From NCBI GenBank assembly GCA_951804945.1, contig OX638153.1:62248001-62312000 (forward strand): a stretch of DNA of 64,000 bases, written 5' to 3'. The notes beneath the pieces were generated by a model. The model saw only the letters and a program-made list of their open reading frames with translations, was not told where the DNA came from and did not search any database. Positions within the stretch are counted from its first letter, which is position 1, and every line of letters begins with the position of its first letter. This DNA is from Podarcis cretensis (Eukaryota). The translations under genes were made by a program, and so were the position numbers. This document shows, in pieces, positions 72 to 53,071 of the stretch.

Positions 72-895
72 CTTCAGGGAGAAAGAAAAAGCAAGGCTAG
101 TCTACTTTCCAAATACTGGTAGATTTAACTGCTCCCCTAAATTGCTTAAGTACACTGCAGTCAAATCTGTCTTCTGAAGTTACAGCAAGAGTCTCAAATT
201 CTGGCACTGCAGGTAAAGTCCCGGGGACATACTATAGACTGAAGAACAACAACTGTGAAGTGCCAATAATGCTGAAAAAAGGGGAAACCAATGAATTAAA
301 CATGGGCCATCACACAAGCACTCCAGAACTGCTCATCTCATGAACTGCTCACTTTGAAGGTCTACGAAACAATAGTGCTTCCCTAGGCTTAATATTGTAG
401 CCAATGCTAGTGCTACTTAGAGTAGACCCATTGACATTAATAAAACTAAATTAGTAATGTTCATTAATTTTTATTTGGTCTGCTCTGATTGTTCACAGCC
501 CTTAGGATTTTGTGCCATTTGCAAGGATTTTCATACAACACCCATGATCTTTGGTGTATAAAATAATATACGATGTACACTGAGATTCATGACTACAAAT
601 CGGTGCTATGATACAAGCAGCATCAAATGAAAATAAAAACCTCTCTCTTTCTACCTGACCTCCCTAACTGGGTCCAGAGAAAATGAAATACAAAATAAAA
701 CTACCAGATTAAAATTTTAGAGAAAAATAAAAGAAATGAAGGTCATAGTCCAGCAGTACACAAACAAAAAAAGGGCAGGTATATATAACTTATCCTCTAT
801 ACAAATTATATGCATGCCACAAAAGAGATTGTTTTAATAGTTAGTAGGGAAACTTGAAGTATATATCATCTCATCATTGTTCTTATTCCTCTCAC

Positions 896-1066
896 CTTGA
901 ACATCTTTTCCGTGACAATGTCATGATCTGCCAGTCCGTGGAGCAATGGGAAGACATCGTCGACTGCCATGGAGATCTCTGTGCGATAAAGTTTAAGTAA
1001 TTTCCGCAGGTCTCCTTCTCCTAAAGGTTTGTTATCAGAACCGAACATCCTGAGACGGGGTAACAT
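896..1066 (-). CDS. AIRE: AIRE coding exon 1, HSR/CARD domain start
   Basis: [38 protein letters not shown] matches AIRE [32 protein letters not shown]; donor AAG|GTGAG; start could be ATG at 1066 or 1048. Confidence 0.93.
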
Positions 1067-2944
1067 TTACAGGATTGTTAGAAGCATGCATCTTCCATGC
1101 CCATTTCTGGTCACGGTGCAGCTGTAAACCCTTATTAAAAGATACCTTAATTCTAATGTACACTTGCATGGGTCATGGCAGATGCTGTGAAGGAACATGC
1201 ATCTTGGGTAGAAGTGATCGTACAGGGTAGAGTAAGCAGTCAGATCCTGGCTTATTTTAGAAACCTCACTCTCAAGACCACCTGCCTGTGGAAATTCAGA
1301 TTTGCAAGTATAGCTTGTAAAAAGAAACTCATATTTATATCACTCCTTTTCTATTACTCATTGTCTTTCACTTCTTCAATGACTGCTGAACATCCAGATT
1401 AGATTTGTTTTGCTTGCTCTGTCTTTGCTAAACAAAGGAGGAAGGTGGTCTTATTGGCCTCACCTGTCAAAAGGAGATGTTATTTGGTATCTGTATTTCA
1501 CATGAACCTGTTTTCTATAATTCCCTGTGCTTTTTATATGCTCAGTCTGTGGAGCATGAAGTGGGGGTGTAATGAAAAACAACCACCACCAAAGAACCCT
1601 GTTGGTGAACCAATAGAATCACAGTGATGACCCTCTGATAGATCTGGGAAGCTGAAGCTATCTCCAATTAAGTCTATTTGGCTTGCTTCGTTTTCTGAAA
1701 ATGCTTGAGAGATTTTCACTCCACCCTACACCATCTGCACACACTTACAGGACTGGAAAATGGAAGGATTATGGGAGGTACTTTTCAAAACAATTAAGAC
1801 ATGGATTGGGCTCTATAGGCTCGGTGTTGGGGCTATGTTAGTGTTGTTGTTTTTTTAAAAAAAATACAATGTATTCAGAGGTGACAACAATCCATTACAT
1901 AACCACCCTGAGAAATAAACCTTAGATTCATGTTGTCAGAAGATATCGTTACATTTGTCAATTTCCAAATTCCAAATTAAAGAACCCCTTGGGTGGGCCT
2001 AGAGCAAGGGAGAATCTGGGGTGATCAGGGATGCAGCCCTAATATAATCTAGCAGGTCAATGTCATGGGTGCAACCAGCGTGAAATCCACTGGATCATGA
2101 TTGGCATTATTGTGGGTGGATCTTGATTTGCAGAAATTTGGGGAAACCCAGATTATATGGTCCATTGAGAGCCTGATATCAGTTTTCTGGTGGAACATGG
2201 CTCTAGTAGGCAAACAAGTACATTGTTGACTGGCTGGCAGCCCGTAATATTTTCCATCTTTAAGTCAAATCAAGGGATCCTTTATTGCAGATTGATAGGG
2301 AAGAAATCCTTAGGTCCACAAATAAGAGTTGCTTCTCCAAATCGTTTCTGCAAGTAGCTAAGTATTGCTGGTTATGATGCTCCTAGTAAGATCTGTGGGT
2401 TGCCCCACCCTTCCAAACTTCAATGGACTTCCCAGAATTATTTTAGAAACCAAACACTTCTCTTAATTGTTCTCCAGTGTAATTCAGGATGGTTGGCAGC
2501 AGTTAATTACAAGCAGTGGGTGGGTTTGTTTACTTTTTACATGCTAAATCTGGGAGAACAAGTTCAGAGATGAAAACTCATGCAAACTCCCAAGCATACC
2601 ACTGGCTTCAAAGCACCTTGAAACATTGCTGTCAGTGGCAGGATTTATAAACTTTGATACCTAGCTATTATCTCTTAACTGCATGGAACTCTTCCTACTG
2701 GATGAAGCTAAAAAAAGGACAAGGCTTATTTATAGTTAGCTAAAATAGGGGTACACAACTCCAATTACTCTGTGGTCACTTTGGGGGGGGGCAAATTTAA
2801 ACCCTCCCCCTTTAAGAACGTCATACTCGTTTAACCACCTTTTCTTCTCCATGGCCCATGGAACTGGCAGAGCAAAAAGCTGAGACACCAAGTGGAGATG
2901 GAGCCAGAACCAACTAATTCTATGTCTGCCCCTATTCTCTTTAC

Positions 2945-3194
2945 CATGGGTAGGCAAACTAAGGCCCAGGGGCTGGATCGGGCCCAATCGCCTTCTAAAT
3001 CTGGCCCACGCATGGTCCAGGACTTAGCGTGTTTTTACATGAGTAGAATGTGTGCTTTTATTTAAAATGCATTTCTGGGTTATTTGTGGGGCATAGGAAC
3101 TTGTTCATCCCCCCCCCCCAAATATAGTCTGGCCCACCCCAAGGTCTGAGGGACAGTGCATCATCCCCCTGCTGAAAAAGTTTGCTGACCCCTG
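2945..3194. mobile_element. Non-autonomous hAT (Charlie-like) MITE
   Basis: Ends CATGGGTAGGCAAAC...GTTTGCTGACCCCTG; 8-bp TSD ctctttac/ttctttac; same family as 30463-30793 in opposite orientation. Confidence 0.8.
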
Positions 3195-3204
3195 TTCTTT
3201 ACTA

Positions 3205-3413
3205 TAGTGGTACCTTGGGTTACATACACTTCAGGTTACAGACTCTGCTAACCCAGAAATATTACCTCGGGTTAAGAACTTTGCTTCAGGATGAGAACAG
3301 AAATCGTGCAGCGGTGGTGCAGCAGCAGGAGGAGGCCCCACTGGCTAAAGTGATGCTTCAGGTTAAGAACAGAGCTCCAAAACGAATTAAGTTCTTAACC
3401 CGAGGTACCACTG
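3205..3413. mobile_element. Tc1/mariner (Tigger-like) MITE
   Basis: TIRs (C/T)AGTGGTACCT...AGGTACCACTG flanked by TA; related copies at 21947, 22010 and 43867. Confidence 0.85.
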
Positions 3414-5824
3414 TATTGAAAATCATACATAGTAGGTGGGAAAGCTTATTTCTATGGAGGGCCACTGACTCACAAGTGTCATTTGGGGTCTGAGCCTATG
3501 TTAGGTGGAGCCATCTCTTCCTGCCACCCATTTTTCTCTTTCTTCTAATTAGCAGAACATGCCCCTGCCCCAAGAGGTCTTCTTGCCTTGCCCCAGATCT
3601 CACACAGCATCTGTGAAGTGCAGCGTGAAGTCAGGGATAACAGGGAGTGCCTCTACTATTCTTCTAAAGTCTGAAGCCAATGGGCAGCGGCAGAGACATG
3701 CCGGATTTCCGCCTCTGTACCTGTTGGATGGCTGAAGCTCCAGAGGAAACATACAATGTAGGGTGCCTTCAGACGGCTGCATTCAGTGCCCTAGTCCCAC
3801 CCCAATCAGCATTTCCGAAGAGGGGATCACATGGGGCCAAGGTGAGTGAGATAGGATAAACCACAGCATGTCTGTTTGGCTCCATAGTCCACCTGTGGAG
3901 AAAGTGGTGCCAATGCCATCACATGCCTCTGAAGACAAGGAACAGAGCAGTGTCCATAGAGTGAGGCATTCAGCCACATCTGCAGTTTTTGCAGTAGAGA
4001 CTGTGCTTTGTGCAAAGAAGCTCCCAGGTTTAATCCCCAGTTATCTCAAGGTAAGGCTAGTTAAAACTTCCATCTGAAATCCTAGAACCAGTGGTTTGAC
4101 TCAGTATTTATGTACACCCTTGATGTTTCTATATGTGAAGAAAGGCTCCAAATGAGTATTTGGAATTCTCCATGGGAGCCACAAGCAGCTGCAGTTTTAG
4201 CTAAGAGATCAAAAGATAGTCATTCATATGCTTGCAGCAGAAGGTTCCTAGCTAAAATTGTAATTATTGTTGAAAAGTTTTGGGCATACAACAATCTTTT
4301 TCTAGGCACTTTCCCCCCCAAAAACCCCACTCCCATGGCGCGCAGATTACACCATCAAGATGATATAGACAGCCAATTGTAAGTCTCTGGGCAGATCATT
4401 GCGAGCTTTTCTCAAGCCATGTAGGATTCAATTTTTTAAAACTTTATTGGGTAACAGGAGCATGCTATACCTGGAAGACGACGCATAGCCACAAGCATAC
4501 TGTGACTTTGGTACAGGATATCTCCTGCTGCAAGAAGCAAGGCACCACATTTTGCAGCAGAGTAGATTTCCAAATGGTTGTTAAAGAACGTTATTGCTGT
4601 CAAGGATCAAGGACATTATCACCTTGTGTTACCTAGGCCTGGTGCTTGGCAACACTTTCAAGGCAGTGGGGCTATTCCCCTGTGCACATCTTAAGCCGAG
4701 TGAGGCAGCAACAGCAACAAGAGGGCTGGGGAGAGGACTTCTTATAGTTCTGGTCCCCCAGCACCTCCACCGAGAGTTCTGAAAGCAGAAGCTGCAGCTA
4801 TCATCTGCCCACTGAGGCCTACAAGACGCAGGTGAAAGTGTTGCATGAATGTGCTTGAGAATAATTTAATTGCTCTCCTTCTAGGAGGAGCTCTTGTTGG
4901 AAAATAGTATATATTGTAAATAAATCAAGTCATTTGAGTATGAAAGTTGGAAGAGAAGCCTCAACAGTGGACGGATTTGATGAAAAACCCTCAGGCAGAG
5001 CAAGAGGCTTACTAGTCTGTTTAGAAATGCAGTCTTGGTAATCAGACACTCCTATACATGCAGAAGCATCTGACATTTTATGTCATCAAAGAACACAAAA
5101 TGTCAAAATTTTCAGAAGCAAAAACAATCAACACTTTCTCTTTTGCTGCTTCTTTTGAACATGACCGGTCTATCAAGAAAATCAACACAATCTTTTGGCC
5201 AGCCTGCCATCAACAAATTCCAGAAACCTTTAGCACTGGGCCTGATTATTGGTACTTTTTAAAATAAAAAAAGTAGGATTAATTCAGCAGTAATGTGACA
5301 ATCATACGCTTACTACTAAATCATATATTTCCCCCCCCCATTACTTTGAGTTTTAAATGAACATAACCAATCAATACAAACACATGGAAAAAGAAAAATT
5401 AGCTGCTTTTTTTGCAATGTATGGAGCGAGGCATTTGTATGTATGCTACAGAACATATATCATTTGAATTACCCCTTCCAGGAAACAAAAAAGATTTTTG
5501 ATCCCTAAAACATTAAACTCAGAGTGACTGAATCTCATTCTGACGATTTCCTTCATTCGAAGGTTCAAAATTTGCCTGTGCAGAAAATATATTGCAATTT
5601 GGGGAGGTATTTAATATTAGGACCAATGAGGGATGATAATTTTAGGCATTTGGTTAGCTTATCTTGACTGGGAATGGAAACACAACTTCAAAATTAACTA
5701 TGACTATTGAAAGCAAACATTTGGAAATATCCATCTAAAAACTTTAAAGGAGACAAATTTTAATGGAAGCACTGTCACTACCATTAGTGATGGCTCACTT
5801 GTTTTCCCGAAAAAAGAGGGTACT

Positions 5825-5830
5825 TTTATT
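5825..5830 (-). terminator. Candidate poly(A) signal of the 292-aa gene
   Basis: AATAAA on the minus strand about 2.25 kb downstream of the stop, after AT-rich UTR-like sequence. Confidence 0.35.
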
Positions 5831-8084
5831 GCTTCAAAGATCCAGTAAAACTGCTTGCATTACTGACATAATGCACATCACCCAATTACATTACAATTAA
5901 TTGCATTAATCGTCTCTCCAGTCAGCCTTTTTGACATGGTTTTAGAGCGGGGCTACTTCCCATATGGGAAATCAAATGTATAAGCAAGGGCAGATGTAGT
6001 AATAAATCACTGTTCCTTAGCTTGACACAACATGCATATAATGCTGCATAAAGTTACATTTTTGGTCCATATGAAAAAAGGCAACAGTTGAAATAAAACC
6101 ATTTCTGGCAAAGGGTAACAAAATGATGGCAATTTGTTATTAGGATTTTGGGCTAGACAGGTGCCCTTTGCCTAAAAGTAACCATTTAATATTCTGAAGT
6201 ACTTGTATTTATGGAAATTATGTGAGCAAAATTTAGAAGAAGATTATGGTAACTTTAACAGGCCAGTTATATCGCCCAACGTTAATTCCAACACACAGCA
6301 TTTTGGTGCACAGTTCACATCTTCAGCCAAGAACCATTAGGTGGTGATAGATCAAGTGACGTACATATATCTGTAAACCATTCCCAATACCCCATGATTT
6401 CTAGGATTTAACTACTATACAGCCAATGGGGCAGTGTACTGAGGAATATACTCTTCCCAACATGATGGGAAACATGGGTATGGGTGTGGGTGTGTTGCCG
6501 GGTATTTGTGACTTTCCAGAGATAAGATTACAGAAATTCCACATGTGGATGTCTGTGTATACACCATGTGATCCAGAGGTCATGTAATGTAACAGTACAT
6601 GAACAGACCATCATGCATACAATATGTTTGGATCTGAGACTGTGAAAACTAGCCATCTGTATGCTGGGGAAAAACCAGTGAGGTATGAAAACAGAAGTTT
6701 TGCCTAGCTTTGAAAGGGCTGCAATCTGTACTACCAATGCTCACTGCAGGCAGAGCTACAAATTTCTCAAGATGGAAGGACTTGCTTCTGTTTCAGTGGA
6801 CATTATAACTGCAGTGCAGCTACGTCCTTCCACTGTAGCAAACACTGCAGTGCATTCATTTGCAATCCTTACTCAATGAAAAGAAGAATTAAACACCTTT
6901 AAAATAATTCGTAAGGCAGTTCCAACCCCATGCTATGTTCAGTGCATTATACATGTTTATGTCTCAAATATTTTCAATTACAAATTCTACTTTTCCACAT
7001 ATATTTCTCACCACTGATATTTAATTGCTAAGAATGCAGAAAATATACAAATAGTTGTTACCACCACATTTATACCAAGAGCCATTTTTAAAATTTCCTG
7101 ACTTTTTTTTCTTCTCACATGAACCAATGCTATTTATCAAAAGCTGCTTTTCAGAACTGTATAGGTATTTTAGGAACTAAGTATCTGCAAGATCAAACAG
7201 AGGAAACCTATTTTCTTTCGCCTGCAAGCACCTAGTCCTGAAAGGCGCAGAACCCCTTCAAGTCTCAATGAAGTAATGGCAAATTGTATATGGTCAGTCT
7301 CTTAAGACCATACAAGTATTATCAAGGTATGGAGGTGGGCATTACAGGAAACTACTGTACTTTTTAGATAATTGAGCCAATTACTGTTTTCCCTTCAGGT
7401 GTGCTTACTTACTTACTTACTGTTTTAACAGGCAGGAAGATAGCAGTCTATTGTGAGTCTCAAAAAGATCCTGCATTGTGACACACAGCCCCACAACCAT
7501 GTTCCCCTTTTAGCTGCCATCTCACGAGTTACCATTTTTTATTTTAATTGTACATGGTCTCCCAGTCTTGGGAGACACTGAGGTTGGAATGGGCAACAGG
7601 TTATATAATATGACTCTCCTGCAGGAGAGTCTGCATTTTCTCCTCACATTTCTATTTCAGGCCACTATACAACATTTCAGCAAAATGTTTTTTTAAGGAG
7701 TGTCCAGCCCAACATGAAGACTGTATGAAATGGAGAATGCACCACCTTCCTAAGAAGTCTGTTCCAGTGGTTAAATTATTATATAACATAACCTACTATT
7801 GTGCATTTGGTTTGCTTTAACAGCCAAACATTGGTTTTTCTGTCTTCCTTTGCTACACTATAGCTTTTTAGTGCACAGTACTTTCACCTTGTGAAGGTAT
7901 CAGTACAGGCCTAAACAAATCTTACTTTCTCAGTAAGCTAAAAGCCCATTTCTACTGGTGCCATTGCTTTGGTGGTGTTGCTGTACATTAATGGGGCTCA
8001 ACAAAATTATCTACATCAACTTCCAATTAGTCAGGGTATTAAGACCTCCCAAAACTTCAACAGAAACAGATTTTGAATGTTGGG

Positions 8085-8963
8085 CTAGCAGTTTTCATAT
8101 TTGTCAAAAGTCTCATAGAACCCTGGTCTGACTTTTCTGATGCTCATACGTATATGTTGACATTCAGGTGCAACTGACTCGCTATAGCTAGTTGAAGATG
8201 CTGTCCCAGTAATCCAGCCAGAAGATAGGCGCTTTCTTTTTGCCTTATGTGAAAAGTTCCCAATTCCTTTGCTGCGTCCAAGGCAGGGGTCATCTTTCTT
8301 CCTACTGCTGACATCTTCAACTGGCTGCTCATCTCTATTGGAAGTCATTCCTTTACGCTTACATGCATCTTTCTCTTCTTCTGCAATCTTCCTGAAGTGC
8401 TCCAGTGATTCTACTTTTCTTCGTCTTTCTATTGTTTCCATTTGTTTCTTGTCCACGAAGTCCTCAAAGTACATTTTTCTTTCACTCCTCTGATCTTCAA
8501 GAAATTTCCATTCAATGTCAGTCATCTTCACACCACTGTATTGCTCCAATTTCTCTCTTGTTCCTGTGTCTGTACAAAATATGTCAAAAAGCTGCTCTGA
8601 ACTCCTGTTGAAATCATCTGCTTTCTGTGTAAACAACTCATTTTTTCTTCGCTTTCTGGACTGATATAATTTTGAAAACTCCTCATACACCTTAAGAATA
8701 TGCTTCTTTATGCTTTGTGTTGCTATGGTATACAAATTGCAAAACAACCAGTGCTCCTGCAGAAGTTCAGCAAGCAACTGGGCAGCATCTTCTTTGGATC
8801 GCTGGGCTTGCCCAGCCCTTTTCGGGTGCAATAGATATAGCATGTTTTGAATGACATCCTTCTTGGTAGGCAGAATTCCTTGTGCAAATTCTGATGACTC
8901 CACATAATCAACTGTTCCCAGAGTTTTTTTTGCTTTTGCTTTAGTATCCAAAGCCGCCATCAT
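8085..8963 (-). CDS. Uncharacterized 292-aa protein, probable domesticated N-terminal part of a hATm/Cc8K15.2-like transposase
   Basis: Uninterrupted 879-nt ORF; splice acceptor TATTTCAG 29 nt upstream of ATG (exon starts 8992); motifs LPTKKDVIQ, W..C.LYT...I..HI.K.YEEF, LFDI, FLEDQR, HIR.S.RKVRP.FYET; CpG island upstream. Confidence 0.75.
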   Translation of the reverse strand: MMAALDTKAKAKKTLGTVDYVESSEFAQGILPTKKDVIQNMLYLLHPKRAGQAQRSKEDAAQLLAELLQEHWLFCNLYTIATQSIKKHILKVYEEFSKLYQSRKRRKNELFTQKADDFNRSSEQLFDIFCTDTGTREKLEQYSGVKMTDIEWKFLEDQRSERKMYFEDFVDKKQMETIERRRKVESLEHFRKIAEEEKDACKRKGMTSNRDEQPVEDVSSRKKDDPCLGRSKGIGNFSHKAKRKRLSSGWITGTASSTSYSESVAPECQHIRMSIRKVRPGFYETFDKYENC

Positions 8964-10099
8964 TCCTTTCCAGTGTCTCTTTATACCAAAAGCTGAAATA
9001 AAAGAGGTATTAGACAGCTGAAATAGAGTAGCAACAAGAATGAAAAGAAAAACTTAATTATGTGAAGCTAAGAATATGTAAGTCAAGGTGGTCAAAGTGT
9101 TCAGGACTGCAGCCAATATAAAAAATCAAGTAATTTCTGGAGAGAGCATTACTAAGTTCCAACCATTTGGATTAAGTAAGCTCCTATCTGAAAAACAAAA
9201 CTGACTTGTCAAGCAGTAAAGTATTTTATTCATGTTAGCTGCAGTCTGAATTTCCCACATGATCTGTCATTGGCACAGCTAAATCATACATATATAATTC
9301 AGTACGTTCTTATATTTTAATATTTAAAAATATAGTGCAATATCACACAAGGTAGACCCAGAGTACTTGTCCATTGATTTCAGTGGGTCTCCTTTGAGCA
9401 CGATTAACATTAGATACCATCTATTAAACCCTATTAGGGAATTCACAAAAAGCCTTCTAGCAATGGCACAGGTGTTTCTCCGATTAACTACAAATCACCT
9501 CAACAAGCAGTCTTAATATTTTGTACATTATAACTCAGAAATCTGTGGTGGCCAAGTTACCTTCAAATCTTTAAAAATATTTATTTACAACATTTCAAGC
9601 CTGCTCTCCCATCACACAGGTAGCCTTTAACAGATTGCACTGCAACAGTTCCAAGAGCTGTGCTTGGAATCCTCAAACTTGCATTTTCAAAGCTGCCTGC
9701 TGCAATAAGTGCTCTGGTATAATTACATTAATCTTCCTGTCAGTGCAACCTGATGCATATATATTCACAAGCAAGTCCCAATGAGTTGACTACAGCATTT
9801 CCTCCCAGATGTGCATAGTGTTGCAATCTGAAATGGAACAGTATTTTCTAAAGGAAACCTGAATCCCAGAATTGAAACAGGCAAATAAATACAAATAGCA
9901 CCTGTCAGCATATGTACAATGATGCTTCCAAGTTTTCGCATTCAGGCAATTTCCTATTGTCAAACTGTAAGCAAATTTTCAACTGAAGGGCTCAAAACTT
10001 GGATTTTTAAGGAGATGCAATCACAGAATTTATGAAAGTCCGCTCTAGGTCCTGGAAACTATGAGCGAGGGTAGTGCACTAAACCAAAGAGGCTTGAGA

Positions 10100-11600
10100 G
10101 CGTAACGTCCGGGGATCACGTTCTGGAGGCCAACAGGGGGGATTAACGCAGCCCACCGAGAAGGAAGGGATCTTTCTAAAACCTGTCAAGCGGACCACCC
10201 CTGCACCGCCTCAAAGCAGGGGGCTGTCAAGAGCACCAGAGAACACCTGCGCACCCCATTGCCCGCCTGCAAAGCAGGGACCAGGCACTCCACGTACGGC
10301 AGTTGCCAGCCCTTATTCCTGCCTGGAAAATAACGCCGATGAGGCGAAAGCCGCCACAGGCGCCATGAGGCGGATGGGGGTGGGGCCCGGCCGCCCTCCC
10401 TCTCAGCCCGGGCAAGTTCCTCCCCACTCCCAGGCCGAAGCCGCCTGAGGCCCAGGCGCCGTTTCCCCTGCCCGGCCGGCCAACCGTTGAATAGCCCGGC
10501 CTGGCCGGCTCTAATCCCGCCTATCCCGTTATCCCCAAGACCTGCCTTCGATCAGCAGAACCAGCCAGAAGAGGTAAAGCGTCAATTAAAAGCCCGCGGC
10601 CCATCCTTCGCCATCTTGGTAAGTCAGAGCGAGCGAGCGAGCCCTACGCAGCGGGAAAAGGGAAAGCGGTGCCGCCGCCGCCATCTTGAGAAAGGGCAGC
10701 GCGAGCAACCCTTGCCCTGTGGTGGTCTCTCATGCCGACGTCTCTATGATCTCAACTGTCATTCACCGAGTTGCTTTGAAAAAATAAACTGGGCGTTGGT
10801 AGCTAATATATGGTCCCGTTTTTGCAGCTGAGGCGAAAACCGGGCCTGTGAGGCCTCCTTGTGGGAAAAAAAAGACGAACAAGTAACGACGACGACGGCA
10901 AAAAAAAAAGACCCAGTCGCCAACTACCGTCAGGTGAGCAGAACCAGTAAGCGAAGCCAAGGCAAATGGACGAAGGGGTCTTGCTTCTTAAGGGGAAGGT
11001 CGGAGGCAGGTTATCGTCAGTGCGAGGCAACCGATTGGTTAACTAACGCAGCCGTTCCCTGCTGAGCGCCATTACGCACTGGCGGAGGAGGAAGCTGATT
11101 GGTTCTTGAGGAGGCAACCCGTCTGGTCGCGATTAAACTAATAGCCTTTCTTGGGCGGAAGCTGAAGCCGCACCAGTACCAGACTCGACCATAGACCAAT
11201 GCCCTCTTTCGGGAGACTGTCGTCATATTACTAATGATAGTGAGAGCGGGAAGAGAGAGTCAGCGGATGCCCCGGCTCCTGCGTCTCTACTACGCGTCAA
11301 CCCGCCTTGCCACTGTCAGTCCGAATTGTGTGGCGCGGATCTGATTCGTCGGTGGCTGGAGTGTTAAGCAGCCTCAGCAGCCAATAGCTACCTGGTGAGT
11401 TGGAGGACGCGGATTGGTTCGTAGCTGAAATTATGCCGTAGTAGCCAATAGGTGCGCCGCGAAGTTTGTATAAAAATGGTCGCGTTGAGGCGGAAGGTTG
11501 TGCAGTCCAGCATTCTGTTTTTAGCTGTTCTTGGATAGGCGTCTTTCTCACCCGGGGGGCGGGAGTAGTCGTATCTTTGCTTTGTCTCTATTAAGATATA
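10100..11600. promoter_or_regulatory. CpG island / bidirectional promoter for SCLY and the 292-aa gene
   Basis: Abrupt CpG-rich zone; two YY1 sites (CGCCATCTT at about 10609 and 10679), six CCAAT boxes (11034, 11098, 11196, 11381, 11413, 11445), ETS-type GCGGAAG, TATAAAA at 11469; candidate donors at 10766 (minus) and 11395 (plus). Confidence 0.85.
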
Positions 11601-13411
11601 CGCTCCCAAGTCCAAAGGGAGGTTCAGTTTATGTCTTGTGGGCAAGAGCTGAGGAGAACAGTTCTCCATTTTGTTCAGCACAATTTCAGCAGTAAAAAAC
11701 ATATCAGTGTAAATAAAATAAAAGGAACCAACTTGGTGACTCATATAATTTTTTATTTTTTTTTTGCATTAATGGTAGTATGGTGCCATCCACGTTCATG
11801 AGGCTTTGCAACAAAACAAGGAGCTGATAGGTCCCTGCCCCAAGGGGTTCACAATCCTGAAATAGGCAATGACAGAAACGGGAGGGAAGCAGAGACAAGG
11901 CTTAGATAAGCAGTTATTTCAGGTACATGTATTTAGGGTTAATTACAGTAGGCCATTGGGATTAGAAGGTTGTGCTAAAAACTTAATGGAAAGGGCGGGG
12001 TTTCAGTGCAAAAACAAAGCAATGATAATTACAAACGGAGAGGAACGATAACAACTGTGGATAGGACTGCAAGACATCTAAGGGTCTTTCATATAGTGTG
12101 AGGCTCTCCCATTCCACTCAACAACCCTCCGTTGTTGAGTGATTAGCTACACAACAAAATTTTATTCTGGTAATGTGTTGGAAGTGTCTGAAGCTAGAAG
12201 CATGTCTTTGCCCATAAACAGTGCCTATGCATTGAGCCTGTGAGAGAAAATGGAGTAGCAGGTGAAAATTGTAACGGAATAACTACCATCACTGCAGATT
12301 GAACTACAAACTTGAATTTTTGGCTTTCTATGGGTTTTTAAACTGTGGGGAGTATTGTTTTTGTTTGCTATTATGGTATGTATGGTATGTATTTTTGTGT
12401 TTTTATATTGTCAACCACCCTCTGGATGAAGGGCGGTATAGAAATTTAATAAATAATGATGATAATTTCCCCTCTACTATGAGCTTCCCTGGGGACATTA
12501 GGCAATTCACCTTTGAGGAAGAGTTGTAGCTTGGTAGTGTAAAGCACATGCTTTGTATGCAAAAGGTCCAGATTCACTTTCAGTCTCTGGCATTTCCAGG
12601 TAGGATTTTTTTTGGGGGGGGCGGATTCTGGAGAGCCACTGTCAGTCCTAAAACATATCTCCCATATACAAATCTTTTGACAATTTGTGTGACTCTTCCT
12701 TTGACTGCCTCCCAGCTGGAAACCAGGGAGGATAGCATATCAGTCCTAGGAAGACAGGGAATCTGAGAGATGGGAAATATTTCTTCTAACTTTCTTATGT
12801 CCATCTTTGGAAGTACCTCTACAGAATGGTAATGCAATATTCTTGACATAGGTGCCATCTCTATAGGATTGGACCCCCTCAATATTTGTAGGCAGGCCAA
12901 GCCCCCCCCCCATGTTGAGGGAGTGGAGGAAGCCTCCCAATGATGTGTGTCTAGTCCTTGGGCTCCTCCCACCACCACCATCCTGCCTACAAATGCAGCT
13001 GGACCACTTCAAACCGGTGCTGCCTGCCGCCTAACCTCCGCTGGAGGCCTTGCAGAAGAGACCTTGGCATAGCTGCTGCAGTGGCTGTGGAGAGCCAGTG
13101 GAGGTAAGGCAGTGCATGGGTGGTGGCGTTCTGGTCTGCAGTTGCAAGCAGGGGGCAGTGGTGTTGGGTTTCATTGCATACCCATTGGCCTCACACGTGT
13201 GATGTCATGTTGCGCTTGCGTGCTATGCTGGGCCACTCCAATCTGGGGCGCAAGTCAGTGCCTCTGATTCCTGAAGATACAGCAGAACGAGTAGTGGTGT
13301 CCTTTTGATTAATGGGCAAAGGCATGTCATAATTTATTTGTGTGCTATTTGAAGTCTAATGTTTCATGGAACAAAGTGGGTTGTGTTTTTCTTAAAATAG
13401 GTTGGTGGAGA

Positions 13412-13509: not shown

Positions 13510-14089
13510 GTTTGTAGCTTCCCTTGACTTTAAAAAATGGAGACAATTTTTTGACAATGGTAAGTGCTGAGATTTTGCTATTTTACCCACAATATACCTT
13601 GGGAATGAGTCCTGTTGAATTAAGTGGAACTTACTTCCAAGTAAATGTGTGTAGATTGGATTGCAAAACTCCAAGCAAGTAAAAAAATCTTAGGATTGAG
13701 ATCTAGGAACTGAAAGATTATTATAGTAGTCAACTTCTTAAGTGCTAGAATGCTGTGATTTTCAGCAAAATCACTTTAAAGATTAACAAATGCATTGTGG
13801 CATATGCTTTCATGGGCCTGGGCCCACTCTGTCACATTCATGTGAGTGTGCCATATGATGTAGTCATCAAAACTGACACCACATTTTAAAGCTTGGGGAG
13901 AGATAGTGATGTTTTATTTCAAAACCCCAGTATCATCTTTGTGGTTGTGGCAATGACGATTTCAGAAGTGGTTTGGTTAGGGCAGCATTTTTCATAACCA
14001 ACGATGCAACTTTGGCCCAAAGAGTGCTAGTGTGAATGTATCTTATTCCTTTTTCTGTTGTAACTATTCTTGCATTCTGTTCCCTTCAG

Positions 14090-14202
14090 GAAGATATACC
14101 TAGATTACAATGCAACCACCCCTCTGGCTCCAGAGGTGATTGAGACAGTTACAGAAGCCATGCATGAAGCATGGGGCAATCCGAGCAGCTCTTACACAGA
14201 AG
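14090..14202 (+). CDS. SCLY: Selenocysteine lyase exon 2
   Basis: [16 protein letters not shown]...WGNPSSSY, the class-V PLP enzyme N-terminal motif; AG/GT flanks. Confidence 0.96.
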
Positions 14203-14587
14203 GTGAGAGCAAGCCTGGATGGAAACATTCTATGAAAGCATTCATCTCATTTTTGTATTCATATTGCCTTTTTAAATTCAAGTTACTGCATTGAAATGGC
14301 CTTAAAGGAATGTATTACTTCATGTGATCCAGTCACTAGCACTCGCTGAAATAAATGCTCATGCAAGGAACACAGAGCCAAATCTGGCACTTCTTGTTGC
14401 CAGAAATAATTATTCTGTATCAAAACAATTAAACTCTTCCAGAATTTGGGTGGACTTAATAATTTGTTTATTTATCACTTTATTATATCCTGGAACTCAA
14501 AGTGGTAGTCTTCCCCTAGTGCCACTCTTTGGAGACTTCCCCCCACCTTGCCTTGATAATAAGGTAAATGTGCCTTTGATTTCACAG

Positions 14588-14688
14588 GTCGAAGGGCTAA
14601 AAATATTATAGATGGAGCCCGTGAAAGTCTGGCTAGAATGGTAGGGGGGCGACCCCAGGACATCGTCTTCACTTCTGGTGGGACAGAG
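14588..14688 (+). CDS. SCLY: SCLY exon 3
   Basis: [33 protein letters not shown]. Confidence 0.96.
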
Positions 14689-15141
14689 GTGAGATATGAG
14701 ATGCTGCTAGCACTGTTTTGACCTGGTAGTCATGTAAGAGATCAACCCATAACATGCTAGCTGTCTTTTTCCTCAATGGAGTCTGACTTTATTTGCTTCT
14801 CATAGTATTGGTGACTCCATTCTTAATTAGTGCCAAGTAAGACCCAGCAAACACTCATCAGATAAAAAGAAAGTCTATCCCTCTTCTGTTGAATGGCTCT
14901 ATCTTTTATTTAAAACCTGCAAAGGAGCATGTATTGCAATTTGATTCACTCACATGGAGGTAATGACTACAAATCAGTCCTCTGCCTCTGATCCTTCTGA
15001 GACTGAAATACAAGTCTGCCACTGAACTAGTTTTTGGGTAAGAAATTCAGCATTGTCTACTCCAGAGGACTGCACTGGTAAATCTGGATATTCATATGAA
15101 CATATGAGATTGGGATTTGTATCCTTCCTTTTTCCATTCAG

Positions 15142-15325
15142 GCAAACAATTTAGTGATCCACACTGTAGTGAAGCATTTTAAGGAAAGCAACAAGCAAAG
15201 TTCTGATGGACCAAGAGAAGATAAACAAAAGACTCTGGGGATGTGTCCACATTTAATTACATCTTGCATTGAGCATGACTCAGTCCGTCTCCCTGTGGAG
15301 CATCTGGTGAAAGAGCATGAGGCTG
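15142..15325 (+). CDS. SCLY: SCLY exon 4
   Basis: ANNLVIHTVV...HLITSCIEHDSVRLP; EHDS includes the Asp linked to Sec specificity. Confidence 0.96.
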
Positions 15326-15457
15326 GTGAGTATACTGTAGTGGATAGTCAGAGATTGCTGATAAAATTATACACACTTGCCAGATTCTGCTTCGGCAAAA
15401 GCTCTCTTTTTTTAAAAGCAATTTTAGTTTCTGAGTAGCAAATACTACTTTTTTTTG

Positions 15458-15748
15458 GTGTTGTTGTTTAGTCGTCTTAGTTGTGTTCAACTCTCTGTGA
15501 CCCCATGAACATGAGCATGCCTTGGAAACTCTCTCTTTCTTCTCAAAGCTTCTCCTTTTTTATGTCCATGGAGTTTTCTTGGCAAAATACTGGAGTGGAT
15601 GGCCAGTTCCTTCTCCAGGTGGATCACATTTAGTCTAAACTCTCTGCTATGACCTGTCCGTCTTGGGTGGCCCTGCACGGCATGGCTCAGAGCTTCTTGG
15701 AGTTATTCAAGCCCCTTGCCACGACAAGGCAGTGATCCATGAAGGGGT
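15458..15748 (-). mobile_element. BovB/RTE-derived short element
   Basis: Antisense RTE tail ttgttgtttagtcgtcttagttgtgttcaactctctgtgacccc plus BovA-like aaaatactggagtggatggccagttccttctcc. Confidence 0.75.
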
Positions 15749-15889
15749 TTATGGGTATACTGTCTCTTTATTGTTTACTCCAAATGTGAGCTGTCTAAAG
15801 GTGGCTCAGCGGTACTTTCACTGTGGTGCTAATGGTCCAGAATTGGGGGCAATTCTGAACCTTTAATTCAAATTCATTTATTTGCATCA

Positions 15890-15968
15890 TTTCCTTTTCC
15901 TTTTCCTTTTCCTATCCTTTCCTATGGTATCCTATCATCTCCTATCCTATTCTATCCTATCCTATCCT
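15890..15968. repeat. (CCTTT)n/(CCTAT)n pentanucleotide microsatellite
   Basis: Seen directly. Confidence 0.85.
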
Positions 15969-16505
15969 TCTCGCCTGTCAAATAGTGACCAACACATGGA
16001 GTCAAAGATGGCATTCCTAACCTGGCTGATAAGTGGTCTTATCACTGCATAGGGAGGGAGGAATATATAGCTTGTGTTCAAATGGTGCTAGGTTTAATCT
16101 CTGGTGCTTCTCCAATTGGGCAGGATAATGGCAGAACTCAGTATGAGACTCAGAGCTGTTAGTGGGGGCTTTTGCAAACTGAAGAGACTTAAACAGCACG
16201 CAGCATTTCCCCTCAGCTTCTTCCTCTCTTATCTTCCAAGTATCCAGCTGAGCTCCAGGAAAATCCATTTTTGCTCAGCTGCCTCTTTCATTAAATGCTG
16301 CTTCTAAGTCAATAGCCACTTCCTCCCAAATTCCCTTATGACAGCCATATCTTAATCTTTCAAGACTAAGGAGCGCTTGCCTGTTGCCTAGCAATAGGTC
16401 TGCTATTCCCTGTGACTTTCTCTACTGCTGCCAGATACATAGTAACTGCTGATGAACGCGCCGAGCTATGGGATCAACATCTTTTTTTTGCATCCTGATT
16501 TACAG

Positions 16506-16633
16506 AAGCCACTTTTGTACCCGTGTCCAAAGTGACAGGACAGGTGGAAGTAGATGAAGTGGTTGCAGCAATCCGTCCAACTACATGTCTAGTTTCCATT
16601 ATGCTGGCCAATAATGAAACTGGGGTTATCATG
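16506..16633 (+). CDS. SCLY: SCLY exon 5
   Basis: [42 protein letters not shown]. Confidence 0.96.
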
Positions 16634-16818
16634 GTGAGTTGTGCCTTCAGTTCTGATTACATGTTTAAGGATATGAGGTTCATATATGTGGTCAGATGAT
16701 CCCAAGAGCCAATGAGAGGGAGCTGATGCTCCCCCAAAATATTTCCACTCTCCTTTCACTCCACCAACTTTCAGTCTCAGTATGTTTTAGGTATACAGTA
16801 AGCCCTACAACTCCTCAT

Positions 16819-17056
16819 GCCAACCTAGCAGTTCGAAAGCACATCAAAGTGCAAGTAGATAAATAGGTACCGCTCTGGCAGGAAGGTGTACGGCGTTTCC
16901 GTACACTGCTCTGGTTCACCAGAAGCAGCTTAGTCATGCTGGCCACATGACCCGGAAGCTGTACGCCGGCTCCCTCGGCCAATAAAGCGAGATGAGCGCC
17001 GCAACCCCAGAGTCGGCCACGACTGGACCTAATGGTCAGGGGTCCCTTTACCTTTT
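16819..17056 (+). mobile_element. Sauria SINE, 5'-truncated
   Basis: gccaacctagcagttcgaaagcac...agtagataaataggtacc...cagagtcggccacgactggac...ccctttaccttt tail; CpGs preserved (young). Confidence 0.9.
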
Positions 17057-17694
17057 TAAGCCCCGCAACTTACACAGGTGTTTTAGTTCTGGGGATAGTG
17101 CATAAAGCCAAAATCATGTGTAGTCAAAACACACTGGATGCAACGCCAGGTGGGATTGCCGAAGTTTTCCCCCCAGATGCCCGCTCCTCTTTCTGCCCCC
17201 CTTTTAATTTTTTGTTTTTGCCAAGTGCCTAAAGCTAAATGCGCACATGTTAAATGTACATAAATTACAGGTCTACTGTATAGCAAAACCTTTAGTTCTA
17301 CAATTTTTGTCACCTCATTGCTCCCCCAATCTAGTTTGGAATTACAGGTTTTGCTCTCCGGAGACACAGAGACATAGCCCTATGCCGTGAACCATGGTCT
17401 CCCTGTGTAGGGTTATGTGTTCTGTGGAGTTTATATGTGGTGTCCTTTGTTTGGATGCTGAGTTACACCAAATGCTATCTTCTCCCTTGATCGCCAAGGC
17501 GGGGCAGTTGTACTACATAACAATAAAGCCATATAATACCATCAGTAAAAGTTCAAAGGCAACCATCAGCTTTCCATGCAAGTAATTCTGTGAAGGCATC
17601 ATATGCCAGCCAGTAGGGCAGTAGCCAAAGAGAGAGTCAGAACACTTGTCTTCCTGGTGAGATGATGCTTCCTGATGGTGCTTTCTTCTGTCAG

Positions 17695-17859
17695 CCTGTC
17701 TCTGAACTCAGCCAACGGATTCAAGCTCTCAATCGGAAGAGAACGGCATCTGGTCTGCCACGGATCTTGGTACACACAGATGCAGCACAGATGATTGGGA
17801 AAGGTCAAGTGGACGTGCAGGATCTGGGAGTGGATTACCTCACTATTGTGGGGCACAAG
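17695..17859 (+). CDS. SCLY: SCLY exon 6
   Basis: PVSELSQR...[11 protein letters not shown]...DYLTIVGHK, including the PLP-binding Lys. Confidence 0.97.
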
Positions 17860-18676
17860 GTATGGTGCTTCTCTCTTCTGCCTGCAATGCACTTTCTACA
17901 TGCAGGGTAAGAGATGTCCATGCATCTAGGTCATCTCCCAACATGGTAAATCCAATATCCATGGAGCAGAGAGTTGCTGTCAGCCCATAGAGTCATCCTT
18001 ATTGTTGATAAAACATTTAGAGAGAAAAATAAGAAAGAACATACCAGGGCTCCCTGAACACCAGCCATCATTCTGAGAACCAGACGGTGACCATAATCCA
18101 GAGGTGCTTTGTGTGACAGAAAGCTGGCAGTAAAAACGTTTGGTGTTCATGATTGATTCTCTCACTCATAGTTCTCATTGTGCAGGATTCCAGACTGACT
18201 CTATTAGGGCGAAAGGTGTTTTTCTTATGTTGTTTATTAAATGTGTCTAATGCTATCTACATCCTGGTTTCCAAAACTTTTTTTTTATTTGAAAGTTTGT
18301 AAAAACAGTGCACAATATGTACACACAAAGAATAAACAATGAGGCCATCTCACTTTGGCCTTTTGTGAACTTCGGGAGATTCCATGTGCTAGAGCAGCAG
18401 TTTCTCAAGTTTTTTTTTAATTGAGAACCATTGTTGATTTGCTTGCTGCTGACAATTGTATTTTGCTACAGCTGCCATGCAGATTGTCATTTGGTGACTG
18501 TAATGTAAACTCTGCCCTGAACAGTATTGTGGCCCTCTTCTCTGCAGCCCATGAATCTAGCATGGTTGCACAGGAATGCAGAAAGTGTTGTTTATATTGT
18601 CTTTTATTTTCATCATGAACTCTTGGAACACCTAAAAACATAGTGGACAGTCGATAACTCACTTCTTAGTATGCAA

Positions 18677-26899: not shown

Positions 26900-27590
26900 A
26901 CAAGCCTGGTGAATCAAGGGGATGCTGTGGATGTCATGTAGCTTGATTTCACTAAGACTTTCGATAAAGTCCCCCATGAGATTCCTATGGAGAAGCTGGT
27001 AAAATGTGGGCTGGACAAGGTTATTGTTAGATGGATTTGTAGCTCCCAAACCCAAAGAGTGTTCAGTAATGGTTCCTCATCATCCTGGGAAAAAGTGACA
27101 AGTCAGGTGCCACCGAGTTCTGTCCTGGCCCCATTGCTGTTCAACATCTTTATAAATGAATTTCATAAAGGAATTGAGAGGGTGACAGTCAAATTTGCAG
27201 ATGACACTAAACTTGGAGAGGTACCTAATGCTGCAAAATACAAAACTGGGATTCAAGATGACCTTAACAGATTGGAGAGTTGGCCCAAACTAACAAAATT
27301 TCAATAGGGAGTTGGGCTGGATGACGTTAAGAATCCCTTCCAACTCTATAATCCTATGAAATGTAAGCTTTTGCACTTAGGCAGGAATGGGGGACACCTG
27401 GCTTGCCAGTAGTAGTTGTGAAAATGATCTAGGGGTCTTAGTAGATCACAAGCTTAACATGAGTCAACAGGGTTTTGACAAGCTAGAACATGTGCAGAAG
27501 AGGAACTGTTGAGAGAGTTGAGTACGTTTAGCCTGGAAAAGAGAATGAGAGGAAATATGGTAGCCATTTTCACATACCTAAAGGTCTGCC
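26900..27590 (+). mobile_element. Degenerate CR1 LINE ORF2 (reverse transcriptase) fragment
   Basis: LDF.K.FDKVPH, VLAPLLFNIFIN and KFADDTKLG motifs with stops and deletions. Confidence 0.92.
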
Positions 27591-30989: not shown

Positions 30990-32450
30990 ACCTATGTTTT
31001 GCATGCAGAAGTTTACAGGGTCAAGCTTTGGCATCTCGTAACTACAAGAATTTGGGGTAGCCAGCCTAGGGCTGACATGGCCTAAGACCCTGGATTGCTG
31101 ACAAAGGCAGCTCCATGTGTTCATGTATGATCTAGCAGGTGTGGCATAGAATGCACTTTGTCATATAAGATACTGGAAGGGGTAGGTGTCCTATCAAAAT
31201 GCATAATGAATGGGGATTTGGGTTTGAAGCCTGTCTTAGCTCAAGTAAAAGTGAACTGATCTGCATTGCAGGCACAGCTGTAGAGTGAATGGAGATAAAA
31301 TTATTCTCCTTCAAATAGCAAATTCTGCTTTTACAAAAGAAGAAACAGGGTTGGGAGATTGTGTACCCTCACAACAAGTGCTGATGCAATGATCCAAATG
31401 GGAAGACCCTGGGAAAAGTTGTTTGTGTTCTGGCGGCAGAAAAATATTCTATGTGATCATTTGTTCATGTGATTTCCACAGATTTATTATGAAACAATTA
31501 TAGGAAACCATAGGGAAGATCTGCACCGTCATGGGAGGAGCAAAAATATTCTTTCTGATTACTTGCTAATGTATTGTGCATAGATTGATTATGGAACATT
31601 TATAGTTGCTTTAAATATTTTGGATTGGGAACAAAATGTGTTAAATAGAGAAAGATACTGGTAACTGGTGATTGTATATTATCTGTTTTAGTTCATTATA
31701 AAGAAAATGGAGAAAAATAATAAGGCAGCTTTGACATCTTGCCTCTGTAGAAACCCTCTTTATTAATTCACAATATTTGCCCTCTTTGGTAATATTAGAA
31801 CACTAATTTCTTTGACGGTGGAGGATTGTTGCAGTCCCAATGTGGCAGAAGTCTGTAGAACCGAATTATTTAGTGTTGTATCATCATCAGTATTTAACTA
31901 TCTCTCTTGAATTTCTGTTATTTGAACAGAAATCAGCCGCACCATATCAGAGACATGTACATCACAATTATAGGGGAAATATTAGCTTTCCCGTTTACAG
32001 CTGTGGTTTTTACAAATTTGAATCTAACTCATAAACCATCTCGCAGTGTATTTTCTGTGTTTTATCAGTCAATGCAGGAAAATACAGTAGGAACTGAAAC
32101 ACACGCTAATTGCATCATAGAGCTGTTGCTCCTGAAAGCCTGGCTCGTATTTTTCAAACTAACACCAAGCTTACTTTCTATTTTATCACACCACTCTTTA
32201 TAACAATTCAGGGTTCAGTGCCACAAGTGGAAGAAGAGTTAATAACATCCCTGATTCTGCCATGCGCTTTTAGCTGTTCTCTCTCATCGGCCATGTGCCC
32301 CTTCTTAAAAAAAACACACCCTGCAGTACATATGCTTTCTACAGTACCTTACCCGGTAACCAGAGACACATAGCACCTGGCTGGTACATAAAACAAGAGA
32401 CTCTGCGAAAGTAGGTCCTTCCAGTGAAGACAACAGCAAGGCTCCCAGAG

Positions 32451-32744
32451 ATGGGAGACCAAAGGGCTATTTTAGCTGCCAAGGAAGGAGACTTGCCTAT
32501 GCTGGAGCAGCTGCACATTGATGGTACTCTGGACCAGAACATCACTGACTGCTCGGGAGCAGGCCTGGTGCATCATGCGTCACGAGCAGGCAGGCTGGAG
32601 TGCCTCAAGTTCCTGGTACTGCAAGCAAAGCTTCCCGGGAATCAGAGAGCAAACAATGGGGCAACCCCAGCACATGATGCAGCAGCCATGGGCAACTTGG
32701 CTGAGCTGAAGTGGCTGATCAAAGATGGAGGCTACAGCATGCAG
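32451..32744 (+). CDS. ESPNL: Espin-like protein exon 1 (ankyrin repeats)
   Basis: MGDQRAILAAKEGD...GAGLVHHASRAGRLECLKFLV...NGATPAHDAAAMG; 294 nt; GTAAG donor; lies between SCLY and KLHL30. Confidence 0.95.
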
Positions 32745-33124
32745 GTAAGGGGGTCTGACAAATGGGGATCTAAGCAGCGAGAGCAAGTTAGAACGCTAGT
32801 TGCAGCTAGACATTCAATAAGTTTTCCTATCGGGCTCATTTAATTAAGGTAAGTTAGTAATGGCCATTAACAACAATAGGTCTACTCTGAGTAGGAGCAG
32901 CATTGAATACTACCCAGTGTTTTGACTGGGGTGGCAGAGAGTGCAGGCACCCCTTGTCTACAAACAACCCTTGCTGGACTACCAACAGCATTTAACTTTT
33001 CTTGTCCAAGGGAGACTGTGGTGTTTAGCAAGTCCTTCTTTGTGGTGGGTGTTGTGTTTAAAGTGGGCTTGTTCATTGCCAAAAGTCTGAAGTGAGTTCA
33101 GTATATGCTCTCCATGGAGACACA

Positions 33125-51737: not shown

Positions 51738-53071
51738 CCGTATTTTTCCTTCTATAACACGCAGATTTTTTCTCCTAAAAAGGAAGGGGAAATGTCTGTG
51801 CGTGTTATTGAGCGAATGTGTGGTCCCTGGAGCCAAATAGTGCAAGGGGAGGCAAAAAAAAGCAGGCAAAAATCAAACCGCGCGTCTCCTAGAAGGGAAA
51901 CTTGAAAAGAGGAAGCGGCTGCTTTCCGGCATTCTGCCTCAGGGTCTTACTGCCCACCCATCTCTGTTTCCTTGCTGTGTTTGCTCAAACGGAACAAAGA
52001 GCAGGGAAAGCCCCTCCCCTCCAGGCAAGCAGAGGGGAAAGCTGAAAACATGCAGGAGGGAGAGAGAGAGAGAGAGAGAGAGCACGAGCTGGCTGGCTTG
52101 GGTGGGTAGGTGAGGGAAAACTTTTGCCTTCCTTTCCTCCCTACCCCTCTCCTGCATTCTTAGCCAGCTGCTTCTCTGCACACCCCTCTCCTGCTCCTTG
52201 TCCCTTCTGTGTTTTTCCTTCCCTCCCCACTTAAAATGTGGTTAAAAAGCATGGATCCACATGGATCCTCAGGATCTTTGCATTGGGTCAGCCCAAATTC
52301 ACCATCAGATCACATGGCATGTCCATGGCTACAGCCTGCCCCCCAAAAATCACGCACCCACTGTTGCCTGGGGCTGCAATGGTGCAAAAATGTGGCTAAA
52401 AAGCATGGATCCACATGGATCCTAAGGATCTTTGCATTGGGTCAGCCCAAATTCACCATCAGATCACATAGCATGTCCATGGCTACAGCCTGCCCCCCCC
52501 CAAAATCACGCACCCACTGTTGCCTGGGGCTGCAATGGTGCAAAAACGTGGTTAAAAAGCATGGATCTACATGGATCCTCAGGATCTTTGCATTGGGTCA
52601 GCCCAAATTCACCATCAGATCACATAGCATGTCCATGGCTACAGCCTGCCCCCCCCCCCAAAATCACGCACCCACTGTTGCCTGGGGCTGCAATGGTGCA
52701 AAAACATGGTTACAAAACATGGATCCACATGGATCCTCAGGATCTTTGCATTGGGTCAGCCCAAATTCACCATCAGAGCACATAGCATGTCCATGGCTAC
52801 AGCCTGCCCCCCAAAAATCACGCACCCACTGTTGCCTGGGGCTGCAATGGTGCAAAAACGTGGTTACAAAGCATGGATCCACAGGGATTCTCAGGATTTT
52901 TGCATTGGGTCACCCCAAATTCACCATCAGATCACATGTCTGTGGCCACAGCATGAAGCACAAAAATGATACATCCACTGTTTCATTCAGAATGTTTTTT
53001 CCCTTGTTTTCCTCCTCTAAAAACGATGTGCGTGTTATGGTCAGGTGCGTGTTATAGAGCGAAAAATACGG
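51738..53071. mobile_element. Non-autonomous Tc2/pogo-like DNA transposon with internal minisatellite
   Basis: 26-bp TIRs CCGTATTTTTC..TCTATAACACGCA, TA on both sides. Confidence 0.88.
52233..52937. repeat. Tandem repeat, 154-158 bp unit, about 4.5 copies
   Basis: atggatc anchor recurs at 52251, 52405, 52561, 52719 and 52873; units differ mainly in a poly-C run. Confidence 0.95.

Follow-up and report, generated by a model that had tools for sequence, protein, structure and literature searches.

We examined a 64,000-nucleotide stretch of the genome of the lizard Podarcis cretensis (NCBI GenBank assembly GCA_951804945.1, contig OX638153.1, positions 62,248,001 to 62,312,000; hereafter the window, numbered from its first letter), which carries an unnamed minus-strand gene encoding a protein of 292 amino acids. 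Its reading frame runs intact from an ATG start to a TAG stop at positions 8085-8963. Only four frames in the whole window reach at least 250 amino acids, the other three being a BTB/BACK exon and two frames, of 282 and 512 amino acids, without a Pfam match. The identical 292-amino-acid protein is already present in NCBI. As argued below, this gene very probably descends from the N-terminal region of a hAT-like DNA transposase and has been retained as a host gene by the sauropsids.

An initial annotation, made from the letters alone, had described this intact 292-codon frame together with AT-rich surroundings, a splice acceptor of its own, an upstream CpG island and two basic runs resembling nuclear localisation signals (SRKRRK and KAKRKR), all of which we recovered. 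GC content is 0.41 in the coding sequence and 0.40 locally, and the CpG island lies 1-2.6 kb upstream of the frame. Read along the coding strand, the sequence ahead of the frame passes through a pyrimidine tract into TTTCAG|C (..CCTCTTTTATTTCAG|C), and an exon would therefore begin at position 8992, with the ATG 29 nt after this putative start. A longer annotated isoform from the amphisbaenian Rhineura (isoform X1, P0354, 335 amino acids) aligns to the window from position 8993 onward, and its N-terminal extension matches positions 10929-11018, inside the CpG island (E 2e-5), stopping precisely at a putative splice donor, ACG|GTAGTT. Because the upstream frame of this first exon contains a stop in the window, and after it no ATG, the exon would be untranslated here. 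The predicted gene model has a first exon ending at 10928, an intron from 10927 to 8993 and a second exon that starts at 8992 and holds the whole 292-amino-acid frame.

A protein search with the lizard sequence returned 63 relatives. The named vertebrate matches come only from sauropsids (squamates at 87-92% identity, turtles at ~67-70%, birds at 59-65% and alligator at 62%), and each is annotated as 'uncharacterized LOC', with one locus name per species listed. The 90%-identity cluster that contains the lizard protein spans geckos, skinks, a lacertid, anguimorphs, agamids, an iguanid and an amphisbaenian, its entries all 'uncharacterized LOC' or 'hypothetical', and a separate cluster holds pythons, boas, vipers, elapids and colubrids. 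The sampled squamates are all at least 90% identical, and the Lacerta agilis counterpart is 99% identical to the lizard protein. The Crotalus horridus entry among the relatives (A0A0K8RTD7) is presumably transcriptome-derived. One UniRef entry gives the Pogona vitticeps orthologue (P0346) the name 'Transcription elongation regulator 1-like protein', which our searches do not support.

In a maximum-likelihood tree of 49 N-terminal regions, all 24 sauropsid rows form one clade (support 100/100), which is nested among the long-branched rows of the transposase-like proteins described below. Terminal branches measure 0.003-0.2 in sauropsids versus 0.25-3.4 in the transposase-like rows. Within the clade, squamates stand apart from turtles plus the pair of alligator and birds, with geckos as the first split among squamates, and this branching matches the species tree. 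Copy number, read from the locus names of annotated proteins (one per listed species), and the tree topology both fit what appears to be a single orthologue per genome that has been inherited vertically.

Much longer proteins point to the source of the gene. In a collinear alignment the lizard protein matches residues 5-287 of P0209, which has 932 amino acids, at 55% identity (E 5e-98). Its C-terminal motif also aligns to the long relatives, where it runs on into the stretch that precedes the catalytic domain. Past the point where the lizard frame stops, the invertebrate relatives read on (..KSC|YHMS..) into a conserved region with ..TY.DDGSKKQGAGSF.., ..F..TD.T.HN.. and ..C.VHP... A search with this downstream region returned 103 proteins, many of them 925-948 amino acids long and encoded on contigs of only 3-5 kb, and none with a Pfam domain. 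These ~930-amino-acid relatives derive from marine metagenomes and from molluscs, amphioxus and a toadfish; viral contigs scanned for members gave nothing significant. The family is multi-copy, with one 90% cluster containing near-identical 935-amino-acid copies on several large contigs. In the toadfish Thalassophryne amazonica (P0241, P0338-P0341), each of five loci lies on a large contig of its own (122-175 Mb). These five copies comprise the catalytic part of the family and are at least 90% identical to each other, which suggests that the family was recently active in, or transferred to, a teleost.

On one marine metagenome contig (L007), a frame of 970 codons lies between inverted repeats of ~190 bp, at 656-845 and 4779-4956. 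The element spans 662-4950 (4,289 bp) and its termini are TAGGAGGGGATGT and TAGGGGGGGATGT. Directly outside both ends stands TTACTAG, a perfect 7-bp direct repeat (7/8 if read as a repeat of 8 bp, the length of target-site duplication expected for hAT). For this one element, the termini TAGGA.. and TAGGG.. were compared with the terminal inverted repeat (TIR) consensus form of hAT elements, YARNG (PMC6027215). The N-terminal coding part of L007 is divided over two frames, 1021-1494 and 1458-4370. On another contig (L005), the ends are inverted copies of each other.

The long relatives also have a predicted core of transposase character. An AlphaFold2 (AF2) model of one of them, P0065, contains the RNase-H-like strand order beta1-3/alpha/beta4 at residues 340-432. 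When 48,161 PDB representatives were scanned independently of Foldseek, the top match of this model was Hermes, a hAT transposase (8edg_A; Z 6.9, root-mean-square deviation 3.9 over 109 residues), with P0065 residues 312-444 paired to Hermes 149-264; the next match reached Z 5.5, and most other top rows were RNase-H-like or actin-like folds. Foldseek gave weak RNase-H-like rows only (among them Mos1, the HSP70 nucleotide-binding domain and Hermes, E 0.02-0.14), and an ESM Atlas search with a full-length relative returned only unnamed clusters. Residues D364, D433, C460, H463, W524 and E739 (P0209 numbering) are invariant in 27 full-length proteins; D364, D433, the CxxH at 460-463, W524 and E739 of P0209 are candidate catalytic residues. 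The candidate spacing D-69-D-306-E compares with D-68-D-324-E in Hermes, whose catalytic residues are D180, D248 and E572, plus W319 (PMC6027215). In the alignment, the long relatives carry two hAT traits: a CxxH downstream of the second D, and within the insertion domain a W that is conserved. The CxxH motif occurs in other superfamilies too and is not exclusive to hAT.

At the lizard locus itself, the interval 5000-12500 holds only five inverted pairs, short and chance-like (15-17 nt, imperfect, 82-93% complementary), none of which is placed like a TIR. When ten long relatives were compared with the window by tblastn, matches were confined to 8088-8954, and the rest of the transposase is therefore gone from the window. 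The initial annotation had proposed a host gene retaining just the non-catalytic N-terminus of a hAT-type transposase, with a motif series that it likened to that of Cc8K15.2-like (hATm) proteins; it had seen no flanking TIRs and no named mammalian orthologue, and had placed the end of the frame ahead of any catalytic domain. These points have held up well. The motif series does fit the N-terminal end of an actual family of transposase-like proteins, whose members continue where the lizard frame ends, and tblastn finds no catalytic relic in the window. No mammalian orthologue is among the named matches of our protein searches. The proposed origin is supported by the 55%-identity collinearity, the RNase-H-like core with Hermes as its best structural match, the multi-copy behaviour of the long relatives, the inverted repeats around one of them and the sauropsid clade. 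A literature search for Cc8K15.2 found no paper, and 'hAT-hATm' is an existing RepeatMasker class.

The retained protein divides into parts with distinct histories. In an AF2 model based on a 55-sequence alignment, a confident domain occupies about residues 10-165 (predicted local distance difference test score, pLDDT, mostly >90) within an N-terminal helical module; a basic helix pair, a predicted-disordered linker (residues 205-263 in the model) and a weakly ordered C-terminal tail follow. Identity of the lizard protein to its bird, turtle and alligator counterparts is 77-82% in the module (residues 25-170), 20-34% in the linker and 63-80% over the last 30 residues. Together with an intact frame in dozens of species, this region-specific conservation points strongly to constraint at the protein level, a pattern of the kind that purifying selection leaves. 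The SRKRRK run lies at residues 102-107 and KAKRKR at 240-245. Despite the low identity of the linker, the bird, turtle and alligator proteins retain a K/R run there, which looks like a nuclear localisation signal. The isoelectric point (pI) is 9.15 for the whole protein and a near-neutral 8.0 for the module alone.

Searches for a known fold or family in the lizard protein were negative. Pfam assigned it no family, and neither a zinc finger nor a BED or THAP domain; a PDB sequence search and a Foldseek comparison of the model with PDB and BFVD gave nothing significant; and ESM Atlas gave no usable match. A wide structural scan of the model with VIA-align reached a best PDB Z of 3.6, not above background, with weak tied rows that include winged-helix, TetR and Mu/TnsB/SETMAR DNA-binding domains, likewise not above background. 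We also considered that H71, C75, C130 and H270, which are invariant in an 18-sequence alignment, might form a zinc site, and abandoned the idea because the conservation of H71 and of C75 is under 90% in the full-length family.

The module is also found in a second family of proteins (P0129-type) of ~750 amino acids. This family is very abundant: it comprises at least 953 clusters, of which some contain hundreds of members. Its named matches are insects (phylloxera, a pollen beetle and a psyllid). Pfam finds no domain in P0129-type proteins. A profile-profile alignment of the two families with hhalign covers the module only (columns 8-185 against 10-178, probability 99.9%, E 1.4e-33), so the module is a discrete unit joined to different cores. 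The second family has a conserved D..D..C.LH..E pattern of its own. In the sea stars Asterias rubens and A. amurensis (P0013, P0334 and P0335; LOC117293082), proteins of 405-430 amino acids carry two tandem modules and no catalytic part, and may represent an independent domestication.

The features of the window are collected in Table 1. The CpG island is a probable bidirectional promoter shared head-to-head with a selenocysteine lyase (SCLY)-like gene on the plus strand; the class-V aminotransferase exons, which match successive positions of one Pfam profile, are consistent with an SCLY gene that starts in the island, head-to-head with the minus-strand gene. By eye, the HSR-domain exon resembles the first coding exon of AIRE in a gene extending beyond the window edge. 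Between the ankyrin and BTB-BACK exons lies a GC-richer stretch with the long plus-strand frames of 282 and 512 amino acids (52209-53057 and 53772-55310), which could belong to an espin-like gene as large exons. A plus-strand RVT_1 reverse-transcriptase fragment (26942-27304, E 6e-10) is probably the remnant of a long interspersed nuclear element inside an intron.

Table 1. Features of the 64,000-nucleotide Podarcis cretensis window (aa, amino acids; UTR, untranslated region; o/e, observed/expected).
Feature	Position	Strand	Basis or remark
HSR-domain exon	869-1066	-	Pfam, E 1.9e-11; downstream of the 292-codon gene, same strand
Second AATAAA past the stop codon	5825-5830	-	Pattern only
First AATAAA past the stop codon	7538-7543	-	Pattern only; 3' UTR of ~0.55 kb if used
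Coding sequence, 292 codons plus TAG	8085-8963	-	All inside one exon
Conserved C-terminal motif QHIRMSIRKVRPGFYETFDK, aa 263-292	8088-8177	-	63-80% identity across sauropsids
Predicted-disordered, fast-evolving linker, aa 207-262	8178-8345	-	pLDDT <50
KAKRKR basic run, aa 240-245	8229-8246	-	Within the linker
Basic helix pair, 172-184 and 186-206 (aa 172-206)	8346-8450	-	AF2, pLDDT 58-77; pI 9.4
N-terminal helical module, aa 8-170	8454-8942	-	AF2, beta-hairpin and six helices; common to two transposase-like families
5' untranslated start of exon 2, after acceptor TTTCAG	8964-8992	-	Sequence; alignment of Rhineura isoform X1
Putative intron	8993-10927	-	Donor GTAGTT 10927-10922, acceptor AG 8994-8993; motifs and cross-species annotated isoform
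CpG island between the gene (-) and the class-V aminotransferase (SCLY-like) gene (+)	10001-11600		GC 0.48-0.66, CpG o/e 0.6-1.3
Putative non-coding exon 1, 3' part, within CpG island	10928-11018	-	Likeness to the Rhineura isoform X1 extension
Aminotran_5 (class-V aminotransferase) exons	14064-17907	+	Pfam; successive profile positions 1-34, 122-156 and 169-202
Ankyrin exon	32424-32840	+	Pfam
BTB-BACK exon	60445-61275	+	Pfam

We propose that the gene arose from a hAT-like DNA transposase whose first ~287 codons became separated from the catalytic domain and were then retained. A non-coding first exon would have been added from the CpG island, leaving the whole reading frame in the second exon, and the parts kept would be the helical module, the basic helix pair, the disordered K/R linker and the 30-residue C-terminal motif. 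Since it has no RNase-H-like domain, the protein cannot cut or join DNA or catalyse transposition. Cut-and-paste transposases normally recognise the ends of their elements with an N-terminal domain, such as BED in hAT, THAP in P and a paired-like helix-turn-helix in Tc1/mariner elements. By analogy, since this region usually recognises element ends, the most likely present role would be that of a nuclear regulator that uses the module to bind DNA or chromatin. The N-terminal place of the module in two families, the basic character of the protein and its conserved K/R run fit such a binder. The two parts of this proposal differ in strength: descent from a transposase N-terminus and the status of a host gene are very likely, while DNA binding remains a tentative suggestion to which we give slightly less than even odds. 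For the proposal as a whole we estimate a probability of roughly 0.7, a compromise between the figures for its parts.

Several results weigh against this proposal. A Pfam scan of the 27 full-length relatives found no hAT, BED or other significant family; 20 longer relatives and the profiles of the two families were without significant match in Pfam or among PDB sequences; and PDB sequence profiles do not detect the source family. The Z of 6.9 for the match to Hermes is under the safe level of the scan, and the evidence for a flanking duplication comes from a single element. Because Pfam hAT is blind to the source family, in addition to these two limits, we call the family hAT-like, which is the safe wording, and not a proven member of hAT. 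The modelled module is without a recognisable DNA-binding fold. Finally, no orthologue from a mammal, amphibian or fish is among the named matches, which comprise annotated or collected proteins.

With the same origin, the module could instead serve as a surface for protein-protein interaction or oligomerisation, making the protein a host adaptor or scaffold. In favour of such a surface are the failure of structural searches to yield a known DNA-binding fold, the lack of a zinc finger, BED or THAP domain in Pfam searches and the near-neutral pI of the module itself. Two consecutive helices come after the module, and in Hermes the region just ahead of the catalytic core aids multimerisation. 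Yet the module sits where end recognition usually takes place, at the N-terminus of two transposase-like families, and the protein as a whole is basic and carries K/R runs. We consider the adaptor role unlikely, though it deserves to be taken seriously beside the proposed regulator of DNA or chromatin.

The truncated architecture is also that of known repressors derived from transposases, which keep the N-terminus and lose the catalytic domain. Like the KP and 66-kDa proteins of P elements, the sauropsid protein might compete for the ends of related elements or poison their transposase. However, among the named matches sauropsids are without any full-length relative, and a repressor without a target would not remain at least 90% identical in squamates or persist across the sampled sauropsid lineages. 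Repression of transposons is thus an improbable function for this gene.

A reversed direction of descent, in which an old host domain was captured by transposons and the sauropsid gene is the original, is less probable still. The same module does stand on two unrelated catalytic cores, which means that it has moved between proteins at least once. However, outside sauropsids there is no named host-like homologue, only transposase-like proteins and fragments, and the sauropsid clade is nested within the diversity of the long proteins. Moreover, similarity passes through the module, the position of the linker and the C-terminal motif, then ends abruptly in the middle of conserved long-protein sequence. 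That the frame is a functionless, decaying transposon fragment or an annotation artefact, as the lack of a Pfam domain and of any literature and the label 'uncharacterized' in all entries might suggest, is extremely unlikely given an intact frame of similar length in dozens of species from all major sauropsid lineages, domain-specific conservation and a tree that matches the species tree.

Descent from a transposase N-terminus leaves room for a bolder idea, which we put forward with considerable doubt. The module may be a previously undescribed fold for recognising DNA ends, carried on two transposase cores, that gave the sauropsid ancestor a nuclear regulator under a promoter shared with SCLY. 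If true, reptiles and birds would have a transcription factor family without a mammalian counterpart. Vertebrate regulators have repeatedly arisen from domesticated transposases, and most known cases are mammalian and have zinc-finger or helix-turn-helix domains. The main interest here lies in the unrecognised module and in an unannotated source family of ~930-amino-acid proteins outside Pfam coverage.

The gene is an unnamed domesticated transposase gene kept in every major sauropsid lineage, and its retention spans ~300 million years, as estimated for the sauropsid stem. Literature searches (on the chicken locus LOC424740 and on domesticated transposases of sauropsids) found no paper on it, and its recognition would give a proper name to dozens of 'uncharacterized LOC' entries. 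It offers a clean case for asking what the module binds, why it has been retained for so long and where the source family belongs among cut-and-paste transposons.

Comparison with known systems places the gene among several kinds of transposase derivatives. The predicted core of its full-length relatives has Hermes (PDB 8edg and 4d1q) as its best match in the structural scan, and its candidate D-D-E residues are similarly spaced. In contrast to Hermes, these relatives lack a match at the sequence level and have a different N-terminus without a BED-like domain, while the lizard protein lacks the RNase-H-like core entirely. As in SETMAR and other fusions of host and transposase sequences, the N-terminal region of a transposase has been recruited by the host; unlike in SETMAR, no host domain is seen fused to the lizard protein, whose whole coding sequence is transposase-derived, and the sole addition is a non-coding exon supplied by the neighbouring CpG island.

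The truncated P-element proteins (KP and the 66-kDa repressor) and the THAP-domain genes likewise consist of an N-terminal transposase part without the catalytic part. They belong to another superfamily with another fold, and the lizard protein has no THAP zinc finger. Moreover, unlike KP and the 66-kDa protein, the lizard gene is fixed and anciently conserved, and is not a product of an active element.

Host genes derived from hAT transposons are known from vertebrates and plants and include the ZBED family, the Buster-derived genes and DAYSLEEPER, which have retained a BED zinc finger and, often, the C-terminal dimerisation domain of hAT transposases. The lizard protein has neither of these, and the fold of its module is unrecognised. 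It differs further from the ZBED and Buster genes in that its coding sequence is a single transposase-derived exon to which only a non-coding host exon was added, in ending before the RNase-H-like core, and in its restriction to sauropsids among the named matches. It nonetheless shares with ZBED, Buster and DAYSLEEPER the essential pattern of a host gene of hAT-type derivation that is immobile, free of terminal repeats and, in the lizard gene apparently so, conserved as one gene per genome.

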